NCBI GenBank assembly: GCA_018985225.1
Contig: JADGIF010000129.1
Span: 1-18,300, forward strand
DNA from: Amoeboradix gromovi X-113
Taxonomy: Eukaryota > Fungi > Sanchytriomycota
DNA length: 18,300 bases
Direction of reading: 5' to 3'
Shown: positions 4,890 through 13,280 of the stretch, piece after piece
How the letters are laid out: every line of letters starts with the position of its first letter
Position numbering within the stretch: the first letter of the stretch is position 1
Program-made: the position numbers and the translations under genes
Notes under the pieces: generated by a model
The model's input: only the letters and a program-made list of their open reading frames with translations
What the model was told of the DNA's origin: nothing
Database searches by the model: none

Positions 4890-5402
4890 GGAGTTTTCGC
4901 ATATTCGCAGTCTGTTTTCAAATAAACCGAGTGAAGAGCTTGTAGAAAAATTGTATTTATCTCCTCATTGTTTCAACCGCTTTCAAGAAAACTGCTTGAC
5001 TATTTTCTTGAATAAATCATTTATAGCGAATTTGTATATATTTTTGTATCATTTCAAGACTTTTCCAGATTTTTCTAATAGCTTAAACACTCGATATTCT
5101 TCCTTTTCGCAAATGGTAAATCATTTCTAAATATATAATTAACAGGTACAGCATACAAAGACATATGATCTGATATTCTTATCATCGTTCAATACGAGCC
5201 AGATGCTAAGTAGCTTGTCGAGCAAGGTCGCAAGAAACATGGCTGCAAGGAACATATACATCAGGTATCTGCATCCTTATTCAATCCCACCTCAGGGTAG
5301 TGAAAGCGTGAACGATCACTGTAACAGAGAAACTAGCATTTCTCGATTTTCTCGGAAATTAGGACTTTTAACTAGGAGCTATCGGTTAAAACTAAACAAG
5401 AC
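4890..5402 (+). mobile_element. Non-autonomous Fanzor-derived element: end motif (4901-4928), block A (4979-5157), RuvC-III remnant MAARNIYIRYL (from 5239) and omega-RNA-like 3' segment
   Basis: Block A matches the reverse complement of 9930-10097 and matches 16650-16778 directly. 5238-5336 is 90/99 identical to the reverse complement of 9589-9687. TTTCAAATAAACC (4916-4928) recurs inverted at 18224-18236. Confidence 0.78.
5260..5389 (+). ncRNA. Candidate Fanzor omega-RNA scaffold, copy 1 (lacks about 16 nt present in the 9520-9665 copy)
   Basis: Conserved segment directly 3' of the MAARNI codons, with hairpin GATTTT-CTCG-GAAATT (5345-5360) and terminal AGGACTTTTAACTAGGAGC. The position matches known TnpB/Fanzor omega-RNA loci; expression is not shown. 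Confidence 0.6.
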
Positions 5403-5503
5403 ATTTAACACTAAAGCAGCTTTTATTTCTCTGATATAATACTTCTTCTGAACCCAGAAATTGGTGTAGGAATGAATAATCGACCGAAGATAGGTGAAAA
5501 CCA

Positions 5504-5778
5504 TTGGTGGAGTGTGATAAAGCATTTACTAGTCAAAAATTTATTGTATGGAGCTCTAAGTCCTAAAGAAAAGCAATTTAGAGACACATATGTCAAGCTG
5601 TTTTTAGGATGCAGATTAAGCCCCTATACCTGATATATGCGTCCTTGTTTTTTCTCAACTCAGAGTTCCAGTAATTTCTGTTATTAATGTAACGAAGGTG
5701 ACTTGCATTGCAGCATCCTGTGGAATCTCTTTGTTTTCCAAGAAAACAAGAACCTTAACTATGAGTAAAGCAGTTTAT
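5504..5778 (+). pseudogene. Second, more diverged Fanzor 3' relic with scaffold, in tandem with copy 1
   Basis: LVECDKAFTSQ (5504-5536) resembles the TnpB/Fanzor v.v.E.yTSq motif, followed by LKKSNLET (5563-5586). Scaffold homology covers 5625-5778, including TGTAACG, CTGTGGAA, a perfect hairpin TTGTTTTC-CAA-GAAAACAA (5731-5749) and TTAACTATGAGT. Confidence 0.72.
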
Positions 5779-5785
5779 CAAAAAT

Positions 5786-6319
5786 TTATTTTTTTGTTAC
5801 AGAATTTAAAACAAAAGCCAAGCTACTAGATTGACTTTTTAAGCCTTGCAATAGCTTTAGAATTGGGCTCTCCAGCACTCCCACAAGGTTACTTTGTGAA
5901 TGTTTAATATTTATGACTTGACTCATTGCTTTTGAATCTAAGCATTTGTTATCAACCTTGACGCTCATAGGTATGATACTTTTAGGTAATTTTAAATTTT
6001 CAAAGTTTTCAATGTTGCCATAAAGTACCAGGGATGGACCAGTAATAGACATTTTTAAATTCGATTCCTCCAGTGCAACGTTCATAATACTTGATTTAAC
6101 CATTGTACATTTCCAGTCATGCTTTAATAAACTATATTTTAAAGTTTCATACTCAAAAGCGCTCATAGGTTGCCTATGGCAAACTACTACGATTTCTTTT
6201 TTCAATATTTCACAATAATGATTAAACCTCAATTCTTTCCAAGGCGCAAACCTTTTCCTGTTCGGAAGTAGTTTTGCTTTTCTCTGCTTACTAAAATTCC
6301 AAACAGCATTAATTGACAT
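5786..6319 (-). CDS. Probable mitochondrial large-subunit ribosomal protein uL10m (L10 family)
   Basis: 177 aa with a basic N-terminal targeting-like peptide and the L10-like pattern IVVVCH..MSAFE...LK..L.....CTMVKSSIM..AL......ITGPSLVLY. Divergent, so no symbol is given. Confidence 0.6.
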   Translation of the reverse strand: MSINAVWNFSKQRKAKLLPNRKRFAPWKELRFNHYCEILKKEIVVVCHRQPMSAFEYETLKYSLLKHDWKCTMVKSSIMNVALEESNLKMSITGPSLVLYGNIENFENLKLPKSIIPMSVKVDNKCLDSKAMSQVINIKHSQSNLVGVLESPILKLLQGLKSQSSSLAFVLNSVTKK

Positions 6320-6497
6320 TTCAAAGAGTTAATAAAAATAGGAGTGTATGATCTTGAATGCACAAAAATGTTTTTCAAGGATTTCTAAATTAACAACATA
6401 ATTATGTGCTGCCTATGCTTTCTATTATGGCAACTCTTGTCTTACTAAGTATTTGTAACTTGCTTAGGATCATCAGCCCTGAAATGTATTCGAAACA

Positions 6498-10848: not shown

Positions 10849-11051
10849 TGATATAATGATTCAAACTATTTCAGAAAGTTAGTCTAGTTTTTAAATTTGA
10901 TATCCCATTTGTTTCTTGCTTGTTAGACTATGAGAAACCGGCTCGATCACTCTGAGTAGGAGAATTGCTGGATGTAAATAGCAAGTGCTCCAGAAACGTT
11001 GCCGCTTTTCATTCCAAGTTTGAGGTCCCAAGTTCAGGTAAATGAAAGTAA
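10849..11051 (+). mobile_element. Miniature element relic: block B (10849-10914) followed by a diverged scaffold (10944-11051), directly upstream of INTS11
   Basis: CGATCACT, hairpin GGAG-AA-TTGCT-loop-AGCAA-GTG-CTCC (10959-10991), then TTTTCATTCCAAG..AGGTC...AATGAAAGTAA, resembling TTTTCAGTCAAAGCAGGTCTTTTAATGAGGAGTAA of the 13011-13150 copy. Confidence 0.55.
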
Positions 11052-11057
11052 TTAATT

Positions 11058-12986
11058 ATGATATTATTCAAAACAAAGGAAATGTCATCCTTGCCAATTA
11101 GGATTCTACCTTTAGGTGCAGGAAATGATGTAGGTCGTTCTTGCATTTTGGTCACGGTAAATGACAAGCGGATTTTGTTGGATTGTGGTATCCATGCTGG
11201 TCATTCTGACAGTAGAAGATTCCCTGACTTCAATTTACTTGGTCAGCAATTCACTAATTGCGTAGACTGTTTGATCATATCTCATTTTCACTTGGACCAT
11301 TGCGGCAGTCTTCCTTATTTTACTGAAGTACTTGGATACTCTGGACCGATCTACATGTCTGCACCAACTAAAGCCATTTGCCGCATATTGCTGAATGATT
11401 GTAGAAAATTCTTCAACGATAAGAAAGGCAACTATAATTATACTGAGGCTATGATTGAAAGATGCCTAAGCAAGGTACAAGTACTGGACCTAAATCAAGT
11501 TGTCCAGGTTGATGATAAAATAACTATCAAATCCTATTATGCCGGTCATGTTCTAGGTGCTGTTATGACATTAATCCAAGTTGATAACGTGAAGATAGTG
11601 TATACTGGCGATTTCAATATGACCAGCGATCGCCATTTAGGCCAGGCATTTATTGAGCGGCTATATCCTGATGTACTGATCACTGAAAGTACATATGGGA
11701 TGTACACACGTCCACCGAGAGCTACCAGAGAACAATCTTTCTTAAAGAAAGTGCATACCTGCGTACAACAAGGTGGAAAAGTATTAATCCCTACTTTTGC
11801 TGTTGGCCGAGCGCAGGAGCTAGCTGTAATGTTGGAGTCCTATTGGGATCAACACGGCTTACATGTCCCTATCTTTTTCAGTGGTGAAATAATGGAAAAA
11901 GCCAACGAGTATTACAAACTGTTTCTGCACTGGACTAATATGAACCTGGACTCGCAAAACTACAAAAATCCATTTACGTTCAATCATACTAGTAAATTCG
12001 ATGTCAAGTACGTAGATAGCAAGGATCCCTGCGTTGTATTTGCTACTCCAGGAATGTTGGCTAGCGGATTTAGTTCCAGGCTATTTGAAAGATGGGCTCA
12101 CGATCCGCGCAATTTATTAATTTTGCCAGGATACTGTGTGAACGGTACCATAGGGTGGTTTTTGCTTAACGGAGAGCGCAAAGTAAGGCATAGAAATCAA
12201 GAAATAAATGTAAAAATGCAAGTTGAGAATCTGTCGTATTCTGCACACTCTGATGCACGAGGAATAATGGAACTAGTCCAGCAAAGTGGCGCACTTAATG
12301 TAGTGCTCGTACACGGCTCAAAGGCAAACATGGAAGGGCTAAAAAAGAGAATAGTTAAAGAACTTAGAATACCATGTTATGCGCCACCAACAGGAGTGGT
12401 GGTAACGATAAATTGTGAGTTAAAAATAAAAGCAAATGTATCTAAATCTTGGATGGATAAGTCATCTTTCAACTATTCTCAATCCTTAAAATCATACTTT
12501 GAAGTTGGATTAGACAAAAAATTGGTTTTACCAAAAGTAAAGCAAGCGAACACTAGTGGAGTCCTAATTGAGAAGACTGTGAATGACACGTCTACTTGGT
12601 CTGTTTGTACAGATGATGAGTTCATAGAGAAGTATGGGGAAATGATGAAAATGGATGAGGTAAATCTATATCATGTGTACTGGATAAGGGTTAATCCTGG
12701 TAGCGTTATGGATACATATAAAGACGAAGATTTTGATTTGAACAAGTTTTACAACCACTTGTTTCAAGAGTTAAGCGCTAGGTTGAATCTACAACAAATA
12801 GAGTGTAAAATAAATATCGTTGGTGGAAACAAGAGGAACATATCGTTTCCAGGACAGGGGATATGCATAGTTTATCCTGATCTTACGCATCATGAATACT
12901 ACAAGCTTGGAATAGCATTTGATAGTAACTGTGACTTTAAGCAGATAAAGAACCTAACAAATATTATTGAGAGAAGTTGTTTTTAA
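11058..12986 (+). CDS. INTS11: Integrator complex subunit 11 (CPSF73-like metallo-beta-lactamase/beta-CASP endonuclease); start may be the ATG at 11082
   Basis: PLGAGNDVGRSCILV, LDCGIH, SHFHLDHCGSLPYF, YYAGHVLGA, YTGDFNMTSDRHLG, LITESTY, FAVGRAQEL, FATPGML and SAHSD. TGDxNMTxDRHLG and ATPGML favour INTS11 over CPSF73/Ysh1. Confidence 0.9.
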   Translation: MILFKTKEMSSLPIRILPLGAGNDVGRSCILVTVNDKRILLDCGIHAGHSDSRRFPDFNLLGQQFTNCVDCLIISHFHLDHCGSLPYFTEVLGYSGPIYMSAPTKAICRILLNDCRKFFNDKKGNYNYTEAMIERCLSKVQVLDLNQVVQVDDKITIKSYYAGHVLGAVMTLIQVDNVKIVYTGDFNMTSDRHLGQAFIERLYPDVLITESTYGMYTRPPRATREQSFLKKVHTCVQQGGKVLIPTFAVGRAQELAVMLESYWDQHGLHVPIFFSGEIMEKANEYYKLFLHWTNMNLDSQNYKNPFTFNHTSKFDVKYVDSKDPCVVFATPGMLASGFSSRLFERWAHDPRNLLILPGYCVNGTIGWFLLNGERKVRHRNQEINVKMQVENLSYSAHSDARGIMELVQQSGALNVVLVHGSKANMEGLKKRIVKELRIPCYAPPTGVVVTINCELKIKANVSKSWMDKSSFNYSQSLKSYFEVGLDKKLVLPKVKQANTSGVLIEKTVNDTSTWSVCTDDEFIEKYGEMMKMDEVNLYHVYWIRVNPGSVMDTYKDEDFDLNKFYNHLFQELSARLNLQQIECKINIVGGNKRNISFPGQGICIVYPDLTHHEYYKLGIAFDSNCDFKQIKNLTNIIERSCF

Positions 12987-13010
12987 GCAACAGTAAATAA
13001 TTCGCCGTCA

Positions 13011-13280
13011 AGTATAAACCTATTTACTCCTCATTAAAAGACCTGCTTTGACTGAAAATCTAAAATTTCTGCAAATAAACTGAAAAAGCCCGTCGCTTGT
13101 GAGAGTGGTTGCTCAAGCTTCCAATAAAATGAAGGGGATTATGATTGCACTTGCGATTCCAGTGTATCTTGCTTGCCGCCATGTGTTCTCTATCCACTGT
13201 AAATGACAGCTTGCACACGGATATATATACATATGGTTCCATTTCTACACCTTATACAGGCTCAAGTGTTAGATGCTTTA
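13011..13280 (-). pseudogene. Frameshifted Fanzor 3' relic with omega-RNA-like scaffold
   Basis: Across frames: KASNT*ACIRC (CIRC 13247-13258), YPCASCHL (CASC 13206-13217) and VDREHMAASKI (about 13165-13197). Then AATCCC..TATTGGAAGCTTGAGCAACCACT..GAAATTTTAGATTTTC..CAGGTCTTTTAATGAGGAGT (13026-13045). Confidence 0.8.

Follow-up and report, generated by a model that had tools for sequence, protein, structure and literature searches.

Described IS607-Fanzor2 systems and the Amoeboradix locus

Transposons of the IS607 type, in which the gene of a serine recombinase (TnpA) overlaps that of a Fanzor2 nuclease, are known from eukaryotes and viruses (ISvMimi/ApmFz2, ACa-1; PMC3627910, PMC10530073, PMC10711439; "IS607EU", PMC13565253). 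Protein-less "ghost" Fanzor loci have been described in Spizellomyces punctatus (PMC10432273). The DNA considered here, called the window, is a stretch of 18,300 nucleotides (nt) of Amoeboradix gromovi X-113, a fungus parasitic on algae (assembly GCA_018985225.1, contig JADGIF010000129.1, positions 1 to 18,300). Four loci in the window had been read, from the sequence alone, as relics of the tail of a Fanzor protein (the original prediction). They are non-autonomous mini-elements (minis) of one IS607-type TnpA and Fanzor2 transposon family, termed family A. Both kinds of locus having been published before, family A is a known kind at unusual density.

Family A and the IS607-Fanzor2 systems have many features in common: the overlapping serine recombinase, the DPG motif, the shifted catalytic Glu, a helix-turn-helix (HTH), a structured right end, a probable dinucleotide crossover, the lack of terminal inverted repeats (TIRs) and target-site duplications (TSDs), and 9b0l as the best PDB match. 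In contrast to the GG/GGG of those systems, family A has a predicted AG core and a predicted CAG target-adjacent motif (TAM). Where those systems have a few copies, family A has about a thousand non-autonomous ones in a nuclear genome of 10.5 Mb, and its putative omegaRNA scaffold overlaps the end of the open reading frame (ORF), unlike that of the systems compared. The S. punctatus loci resemble the minis in being protein-less, about 550 nt long and bounded by both ends, with an omegaRNA-like right end and a conserved motif 5' of the left end. Family A likewise kept its ends and structured right end and lost the protein. The S. punctatus loci, however, belong to Fanzor1, have 30-nt inverted repeats and were shown to be active, whereas family A belongs to IS607/Fanzor2, lacks inverted repeats, retains coding remnants and is known from sequence alone. 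MmeFz2 (TAM TAG) and NlovFz2 (TAM CCG) use three-base TAMs ending in G, as predicted for family A (PMC10432273). Their loci have no linked transposase, whereas TnpA is linked in family A, and CAG is absent from the TAMs reported in the literature examined. The literature search returned no paper on family A, none on Fanzor with Amoeboradix, and none on the host phylum.

Family A mini-elements in the window

A family A mini consists of a left end, the first codons of TnpA, an internal deletion, the 3' part of Fanzor2 and a right end, and is 390-620 bp long (one has 936 bp). A DNA profile made from 30 family A copies, all outside the window, matched the four loci and a solo left end (Table 1); it had zero matches in the reversed window. 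Family A sequence occupies all four window gaps above 450 bp, while the shorter gaps are free of it. The proposed spread through the genome is supported, with hundreds of candidates genome-wide.

All four loci do carry the predicted protein tail at the positions given. An open 21-aa piece at 9663-9725 matches PF07282 (E 2e-5) and the guided-TnpB model (E 1e-3). The loci had been read as peptide relics; what they represent is complete minis, with ends that can be defined and, probably, an omegaRNA scaffold. The consensus peptide proposed for the tail proved to be a mosaic of decayed copies. Its ECDKAF stretch stems from the most decayed one (5504), while better copies read ECNE(S/A)FTSQTC and retain the shifted catalytic Glu. 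At 9663-9894, where the tail had been seen twice, two units are indeed present; they form a 112-nt tandem duplication common to at least 40 copies genome-wide and inherited by a whole subfamily.

Copy c1 retains a RuvC-II-side piece at 5161-5241 (hhalign 95.9%, E 6e-9), fused to the tail by a microhomology deletion that joined two ATGGC-containing sites. The TnpA HTH head of c3 lies at about 9980-9920. A 12-nt left flank, an inverted repeat of the left-end motif, is common to c1 and c3 (window 4980-5012 and 10065-10097). Its loop is inverted in c3, and the flank is absent from other copies. Template switching, local conversion and an amplification artefact are candidate explanations.

Coding state, copy number and age

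The Fanzor2 and IS607 identity proposed by the original prediction is supported, for Fanzor2 by motifs and PDB matches and for IS607 by TnpA heads. ALDPG, with the DPG of RuvC-I, is present in family A pieces on contigs C385 and C477 and in the protein of another Fanzor2 family, B; it was lost from the window minis by deletion. Family A copies contain the shifted Glu in NE(S/A)FTSQTC, followed by a C4 zinc finger and RD, with PF07282 scores of up to 74 bits. In alignment A1, E605 is nearly invariant. The family B zinc finger has CxC in its first half. An N-terminal HTH_OrfB_IS605 was found on the C46 piece (PF12323, E 4e-5). All parts of the family A Fanzor exist as pieces (C46, C477, C385, C977, C565), which come from different copies and contain stops or run off contig ends. 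NF033518 scores above cut-off at 9 loci, including the family A TnpA on C46, which is broken. The TnpA heads of the minis match the IS607 transposase of an intact relative on a virus-like contig (L058, see below). Further IS607 TnpA copies with long open frames lie on C787, C373, C690 and C578, and a 551-aa AAA-type ATPase ORF (L046:4956-6608, -) adjoins the broken family A copy on C385.

The family A peptide in the minis is dead. Singleton substitutions in the tail give an omega of about 1.4. The same stop occurs in 10 copies of the duplication subfamily; the frame was therefore already dead when this subfamily spread. Domestication of the retained frame as a small zinc-finger peptide is largely refuted for these reasons and by the lack of RuvC-I, frameshifts in three of the four window copies and stops in about a third of the 150 best-scoring hits, even though an open frame of about 144 codons is retained in many copies and annotated by gene callers.

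The assembly comprises 10.55 Mb in 1,319 contigs, obtained by short-read sequencing after whole-genome amplification. Genome-wide, there are 560 PF07282 candidates (all Fanzor2 families), 879 DNA candidates and 253 TnpA-like candidates. Roughly 900-1,300 pieces are present, about 4% of the genome. Scaled up from the 15-16 extra pieces found beside baits in 118.6 kb, a non-random sample, the total would be about 1,300 pieces, making up 3.8% of the bases. Contig depth summed over the ends reaches some 1,000-fold that of single-copy sequence, a measure that differs from copy number. Copies of the duplication subfamily are 91% identical pairwise and differ by 5% from their own majority; with divergence counted against the per-column majority of transposon copies, C-to-T change reaches 7.3% at CpG and 2-4% elsewhere. 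The family A burst is over, and its copies decay neutrally.

Ends, target and crossover core

The left ends of family A are preceded by (R)CAG, and AGGAG closes the right ends. Neither TIRs nor TSDs were found at these ends. Thirty-two full copies share sharp common ends and have unrelated flanks, and 93 contigs have unrelated loose ends at 9529-9533. The exact left-end core occurs 221 times in the genome, preceded by CAG in 192 cases and by RCAG in 180 (control, 0). Both A and G precede CAG with both left-end subtypes, which fits target choice. A CTCGATT...TTTTCT motif is present in both ends in the same orientation. Intron-like splicing was ruled out, as GT is at neither start.

Copies of another Fanzor2 family, C, start after CCG, the TAM of NlovFz2, and mostly end in GGCG. 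In families A and C, the final dinucleotide of the right end is identical to that of the target, which points to the dinucleotide crossover of IS607 (PMC10711439). The predicted core is AG in family A and CG in family C, not GG. When family A was checked for a GG core in a G-rich target, the target proved to be RCAG. Most IS607 members end in GG, but some bacterial IS607 TnpBs have AG-ending TAMs (PMC13565253); the predicted family A core is therefore a variant rather than an exclusion.

Putative omegaRNA scaffold

The last 110 nt of family A probably represent an omegaRNA scaffold. Their mean fold z-score over 31 copies is -1.6, versus -0.05 at the left end and -0.6 in the middle. The intact relatives on the virus-like contigs L057 and L058 reach -3.8 and -2.5; their fold, too, consists of a closing stem, three hairpins and an unpaired AG. 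In the alignment, both partners have changed in 5 of 13 base pairs, one such change being C-G to A-U within the closing stem; as the pair counts come from three independent lineages and the structure was taken from the same sequences, this covariation is supporting, not decisive. Fanzor2 omegaRNA contains a pseudoknot (PMC11832414), and a pseudoknot of this type was not located in the family A scaffold. Rfam gave only a chance U4 match (E 0.9). With 32 guides, no match to TAM plus a 10-nt seed was found in 184 kb of fetched DNA.

Proposed mechanism and alternatives

Very probably, the minis are derivatives of an IS607-type transposon with TnpA overlapping Fanzor2, were mobilised in trans, and belong to a burst that has ended. 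The parent would have encoded both proteins. Internal deletions would have spared both ends, the initial 30-60 codons of TnpA and the 3' tail of Fanzor. The tail would survive because it overlaps the right end and the scaffold, not because the peptide is used. TnpA supplied in trans would then have excised and re-inserted the minis by AG crossover in 5'-(R)CAG targets, without TIRs or TSDs. Most likely, the Fanzor2 of the living parent used the right-end RNA of each copy with its flank as a guide. With CAG as the TAM, it would cut emptied donor sites consisting of RCAG plus flank, and the copy would be restored; filled sites, with GGAG in place of CAG at the right end, would for that reason not be cut. 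Such restorative homing has been described for bacterial IS607 (PMC13565253).

Several points weigh against this explanation. The covariation draws on three lineages and a self-derived structure, and the right-end palindromes may serve TnpA binding instead. Canonical IS607 uses GG (PMC13565253). No intact family A TnpA or Fanzor was found in the assembly; the parent that the original prediction thought possible elsewhere appears there only as broken or contig-edge pieces. A search for A. gromovi RNA runs found none. Joining of the flanks gave no junction-spanning match to an empty target site in the 184 kb of fetched DNA, and a single DNA run contained no clean element-skipping joint. As no empty site was found, the assignment of the C and AG to host or element is an inference.

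According to the most probable, though still unlikely, alternative, the minis form a repertoire of live "ghost" omegaRNAs that would still be transcribed and be taken up by an active Fanzor2, either an unassembled one of family A or the 671-aa protein of family B. Right ends are retained even in decayed copies, the lowest substitution rate (2.3%) lies just inside the right end, and ghost omegaRNAs function with SpuFz1 (PMC10432273). An assembly this fragmented and amplified could conceal a parent; on C46, the frame stays open as far as the end of the contig. However, TnpA binding would also conserve the ends, and many scaffolds are damaged. The family A pieces differ mutually (94%) and carry stops, the family B right end is unrelated to that of family A, and the family B TnpA has an in-frame TGA. 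The empty search for RNA runs counts against a live repertoire as well.

Mobilisation by another transposase, e.g., of the abundant Sola-like DDE family, is considered very unlikely. Long copies of families B and C do lie within TIR elements, and Fanzor2 in TIR transposons is known (PMC13565253). Family A ends, on the other hand, have no TIRs or TSDs, every mini starts with a TnpA head, and the core dinucleotide co-varies between families A and C, as serine-recombinase crossover predicts. That the repeats are an artefact, i.e., bacterial or viral DNA introduced by whole-genome amplification or misassembly, is hardly credible despite the single amplified sample (PMC8371127) and the nearest relatives on virus-like contigs: conserved fungal genes surround the copies, their contigs have the depth of single-copy sequence (35-38), and each copy has its own flanks, 5-10% private divergence and CpG-biased C-to-T change.

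Intact relatives on virus-like contigs

A full search with the family A piece retrieved two complete proteins, P0123 (59% identity) and P0125 (57%), both from GCA_013565735.1. In a tree of 62 of the database relatives, which holds no named Fanzor1, Fanzor2 or TnpB references and in which families B and C are long and unsurely placed, they group with family A at 100/88. This group joins a Fanzor adjoining a large-virus capsid gene at 100/93. The assignment to Fanzor2 comes from motifs and PDB matches.

The HM residues of the tail, suggested as the mark of an undescribed clade, are not unique to one. Among 229 relatives with a readable RDxN motif, a few of them proteins of the A. gromovi genome, 39 lack Asn and 10 have Met. 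Asn loss is enriched near family A, and the closest relatives tend to show it; P0125 has Leu.

Both proteins are encoded on gene-dense contigs (L057 for P0123, L058 for P0125) that carry SF2 helicase, lyase 14, thioredoxin, S74 and DUF5832 genes and look like DNA of a large virus. Neither bears a capsid or polymerase gene. On L058, a complete TnpA (170 bits) overlaps the Fanzor. Both elements are preceded by CAG and close with AGGAG; the AGGAG end is also exactly where an independent contig with the P0123 element breaks off. L057 also bears GGGAC inverted-repeat ends, common in A. gromovi. Viral contigs were scanned as well; for P0125 they contained just two distant Fanzors, and the GGGAC TIR had no exact match.

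Exchange of the family through large DNA viruses, a route proposed earlier (PMC10432273), is plausible. With the nearest intact relatives on virus-like contigs, one of them with the fungal GGGAC ends, we regard the virus link as evenly balanced. Present-day activity is improbable. Slightly less probable still is the joint proposal that sanchytrid fungi and the large DNA viruses infecting them or their neighbours passed the family between them and that it is still live, an unassembled intact Fanzor2 retaining its insertions with the right ends of hundreds of minis as a guide library and a CAG TAM.

Other Fanzor families in the genome

The only open full-length Fanzor2 gene lies on C542 and encodes 671 aa. 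A full-length ORF, as the original prediction had hoped to recover, therefore exists, but it belongs to family B, with 45% identity to the family A piece. Its D471, E605 and D637 are intact. By sequence and fold, its best PDB match is the mimivirus Fanzor2; the predicted fold matches 9b0l with E 3e-20 and SpuFz1 with only 8e-6. The named relatives of this protein (P0008, P0014, P0019, P0028) come from the brown algae Ectocarpus and Pylaiella (34-37% identity). In the family C copy on C459, TnpA is open and a stop interrupts the Fanzor.

The family B gene sits in a 4.57-kb element (L013:92-4657) that is bounded by perfect 33-bp TIRs, shows an ATTT duplication and has inserted into a GGGAC mini. 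The genome contains 18 occurrences of the TIR core of this element; the core also lies ahead of the family C copy on C459. The element has further ORFs of 303 and 103 aa. A viral origin of the 303-aa cargo gene was ruled out, since its relatives are found together with PRP8 on DNA of a compact eukaryote. These relatives (62-79% identity) are located on L066-L068, metagenome contigs of a compact eukaryote (PRP8, MetH, LSM), beside DUF7869 pieces; on L066, a 100% identical MetH duplication surrounds the relative. No Fanzor relics were found in the 26 kb of L066-L068.

The window also contains a family with GGGAC-type TIRs (Table 1). The TIRs were seen in 4 paired copies; the candidate TSD is exact in one (AAAT) and has one mismatch in two. 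ATTT flanks the 4.57-kb element on C542. The related tail on L057 falls with TNB clusters at 0.96-0.97 and matches 337 places in the genome. The longest open frames of this family are C1157:885-1235 (436 aa), C33:14864-15142 (291 aa) and C574:9485-9820 (273 aa). The family resembles Fanzor1 with Sola-like ends. It has short TIRs, a possible AT-rich 4-bp TSD and a Fanzor-like tail at one end in common with the Sola2-type Fanzor1 of Dictyostelium and Polysphondylium (PMC3627910), from which it differs in consisting mostly of 300-450 bp minis.

Gene neighbourhood

The window is a gene-dense eukaryotic contig (36% GC). Its host proteins include Sec1, Kae1, L10, a Cys/Met lyase, beta-CASP, ankyrin and MFS proteins.

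Table 1 Features of the 18,300-nt window, with matches to the family A DNA profile
Feature	Position	Strand	Profile match	Remarks
Mini-element c1, 387 bp	4992..5378	+	4994-5377 (+), E 5e-57 and 1e-44	left end, TnpA-head remnant, RuvC-II-side piece, RuvC-III tail, right end TAGGAG
Putative omegaRNA scaffold of c1	5285..5378	+		17-20 nt deletion (fold z +0.9 to +1.4); guide position from 5379
Copy c2	5478..5766	+	5499-5761 (+), E 5e-11	heavily decayed, frameshifts; possible left-end remnant near 5417
Mini-element c3, 556 bp	9530..10085	-	9530-10076 (-), E 2e-171	tandem-duplication subfamily, two zinc-finger units, right end GAGGAG
Zinc finger/RuvC-III segment duplicated in tandem, 112 nt	9668..9891	-		in-frame stops
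Putative omegaRNA scaffold of c3	9530..9640	-		closing stem and three hairpins, then AG core; guide position 9529 downwards
Copy c4	13027..13304	-	13028-13284 (-), E 4e-23	decayed tail, well-kept right end (GAGGAG at 13027); weak left-end remnant 13460-13481
Solo family A left end	16659..16803	+	16660-16783, E 3e-25	beyond the range of the original prediction
GGGAC element, 444 bp	10463..10906	-		GGGAC-type TIRs, decayed zinc finger/FERD tail; missed by the original prediction
Partial copy of GGGAC family	17909..18101	-		
Partial copy of GGGAC family	32-138			
Kae1/TsaD-like host gene	3780..4844	-		flanks c1
Ribosomal protein L10-like host gene	5786..6319	-		flanks c2
beta-CASP nuclease host gene (CPSF73/INTS11-like)	11058..12986	+		flanks c4

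Pyruvate dehydrogenase E1 alpha is split over two ORFs (window 828-1974, -); the gap of about 35 bp between them is probably one short intron. Two ORFs without Pfam match were noted, a low-complexity one of 537 aa (7734-9347, +) and a basic one of 90 aa (10170-10442, +) between c3 and the GGGAC element. A 13-nt unit forms a tandem array of about 9-10 copies at 18093-18235.

Conclusions

No new mechanism is revealed, and nothing shows present activity. In A. gromovi, a bacterial-type serine-recombinase transposon multiplied about a thousandfold in a eukaryotic nucleus, while most published IS607-Fanzor2 elements are present in a few copies. Its numerous junctions define the target motif cleanly (RCAG, with a predicted AG core). 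Family C, with its CCG target and predicted CG core, offers a natural test of the co-evolution of transposase and TAM. L058 provides a natural intact TnpA-Fanzor2 pair with which the predicted CAG TAM and the putative 110-nt scaffold could be tested without reconstruction.

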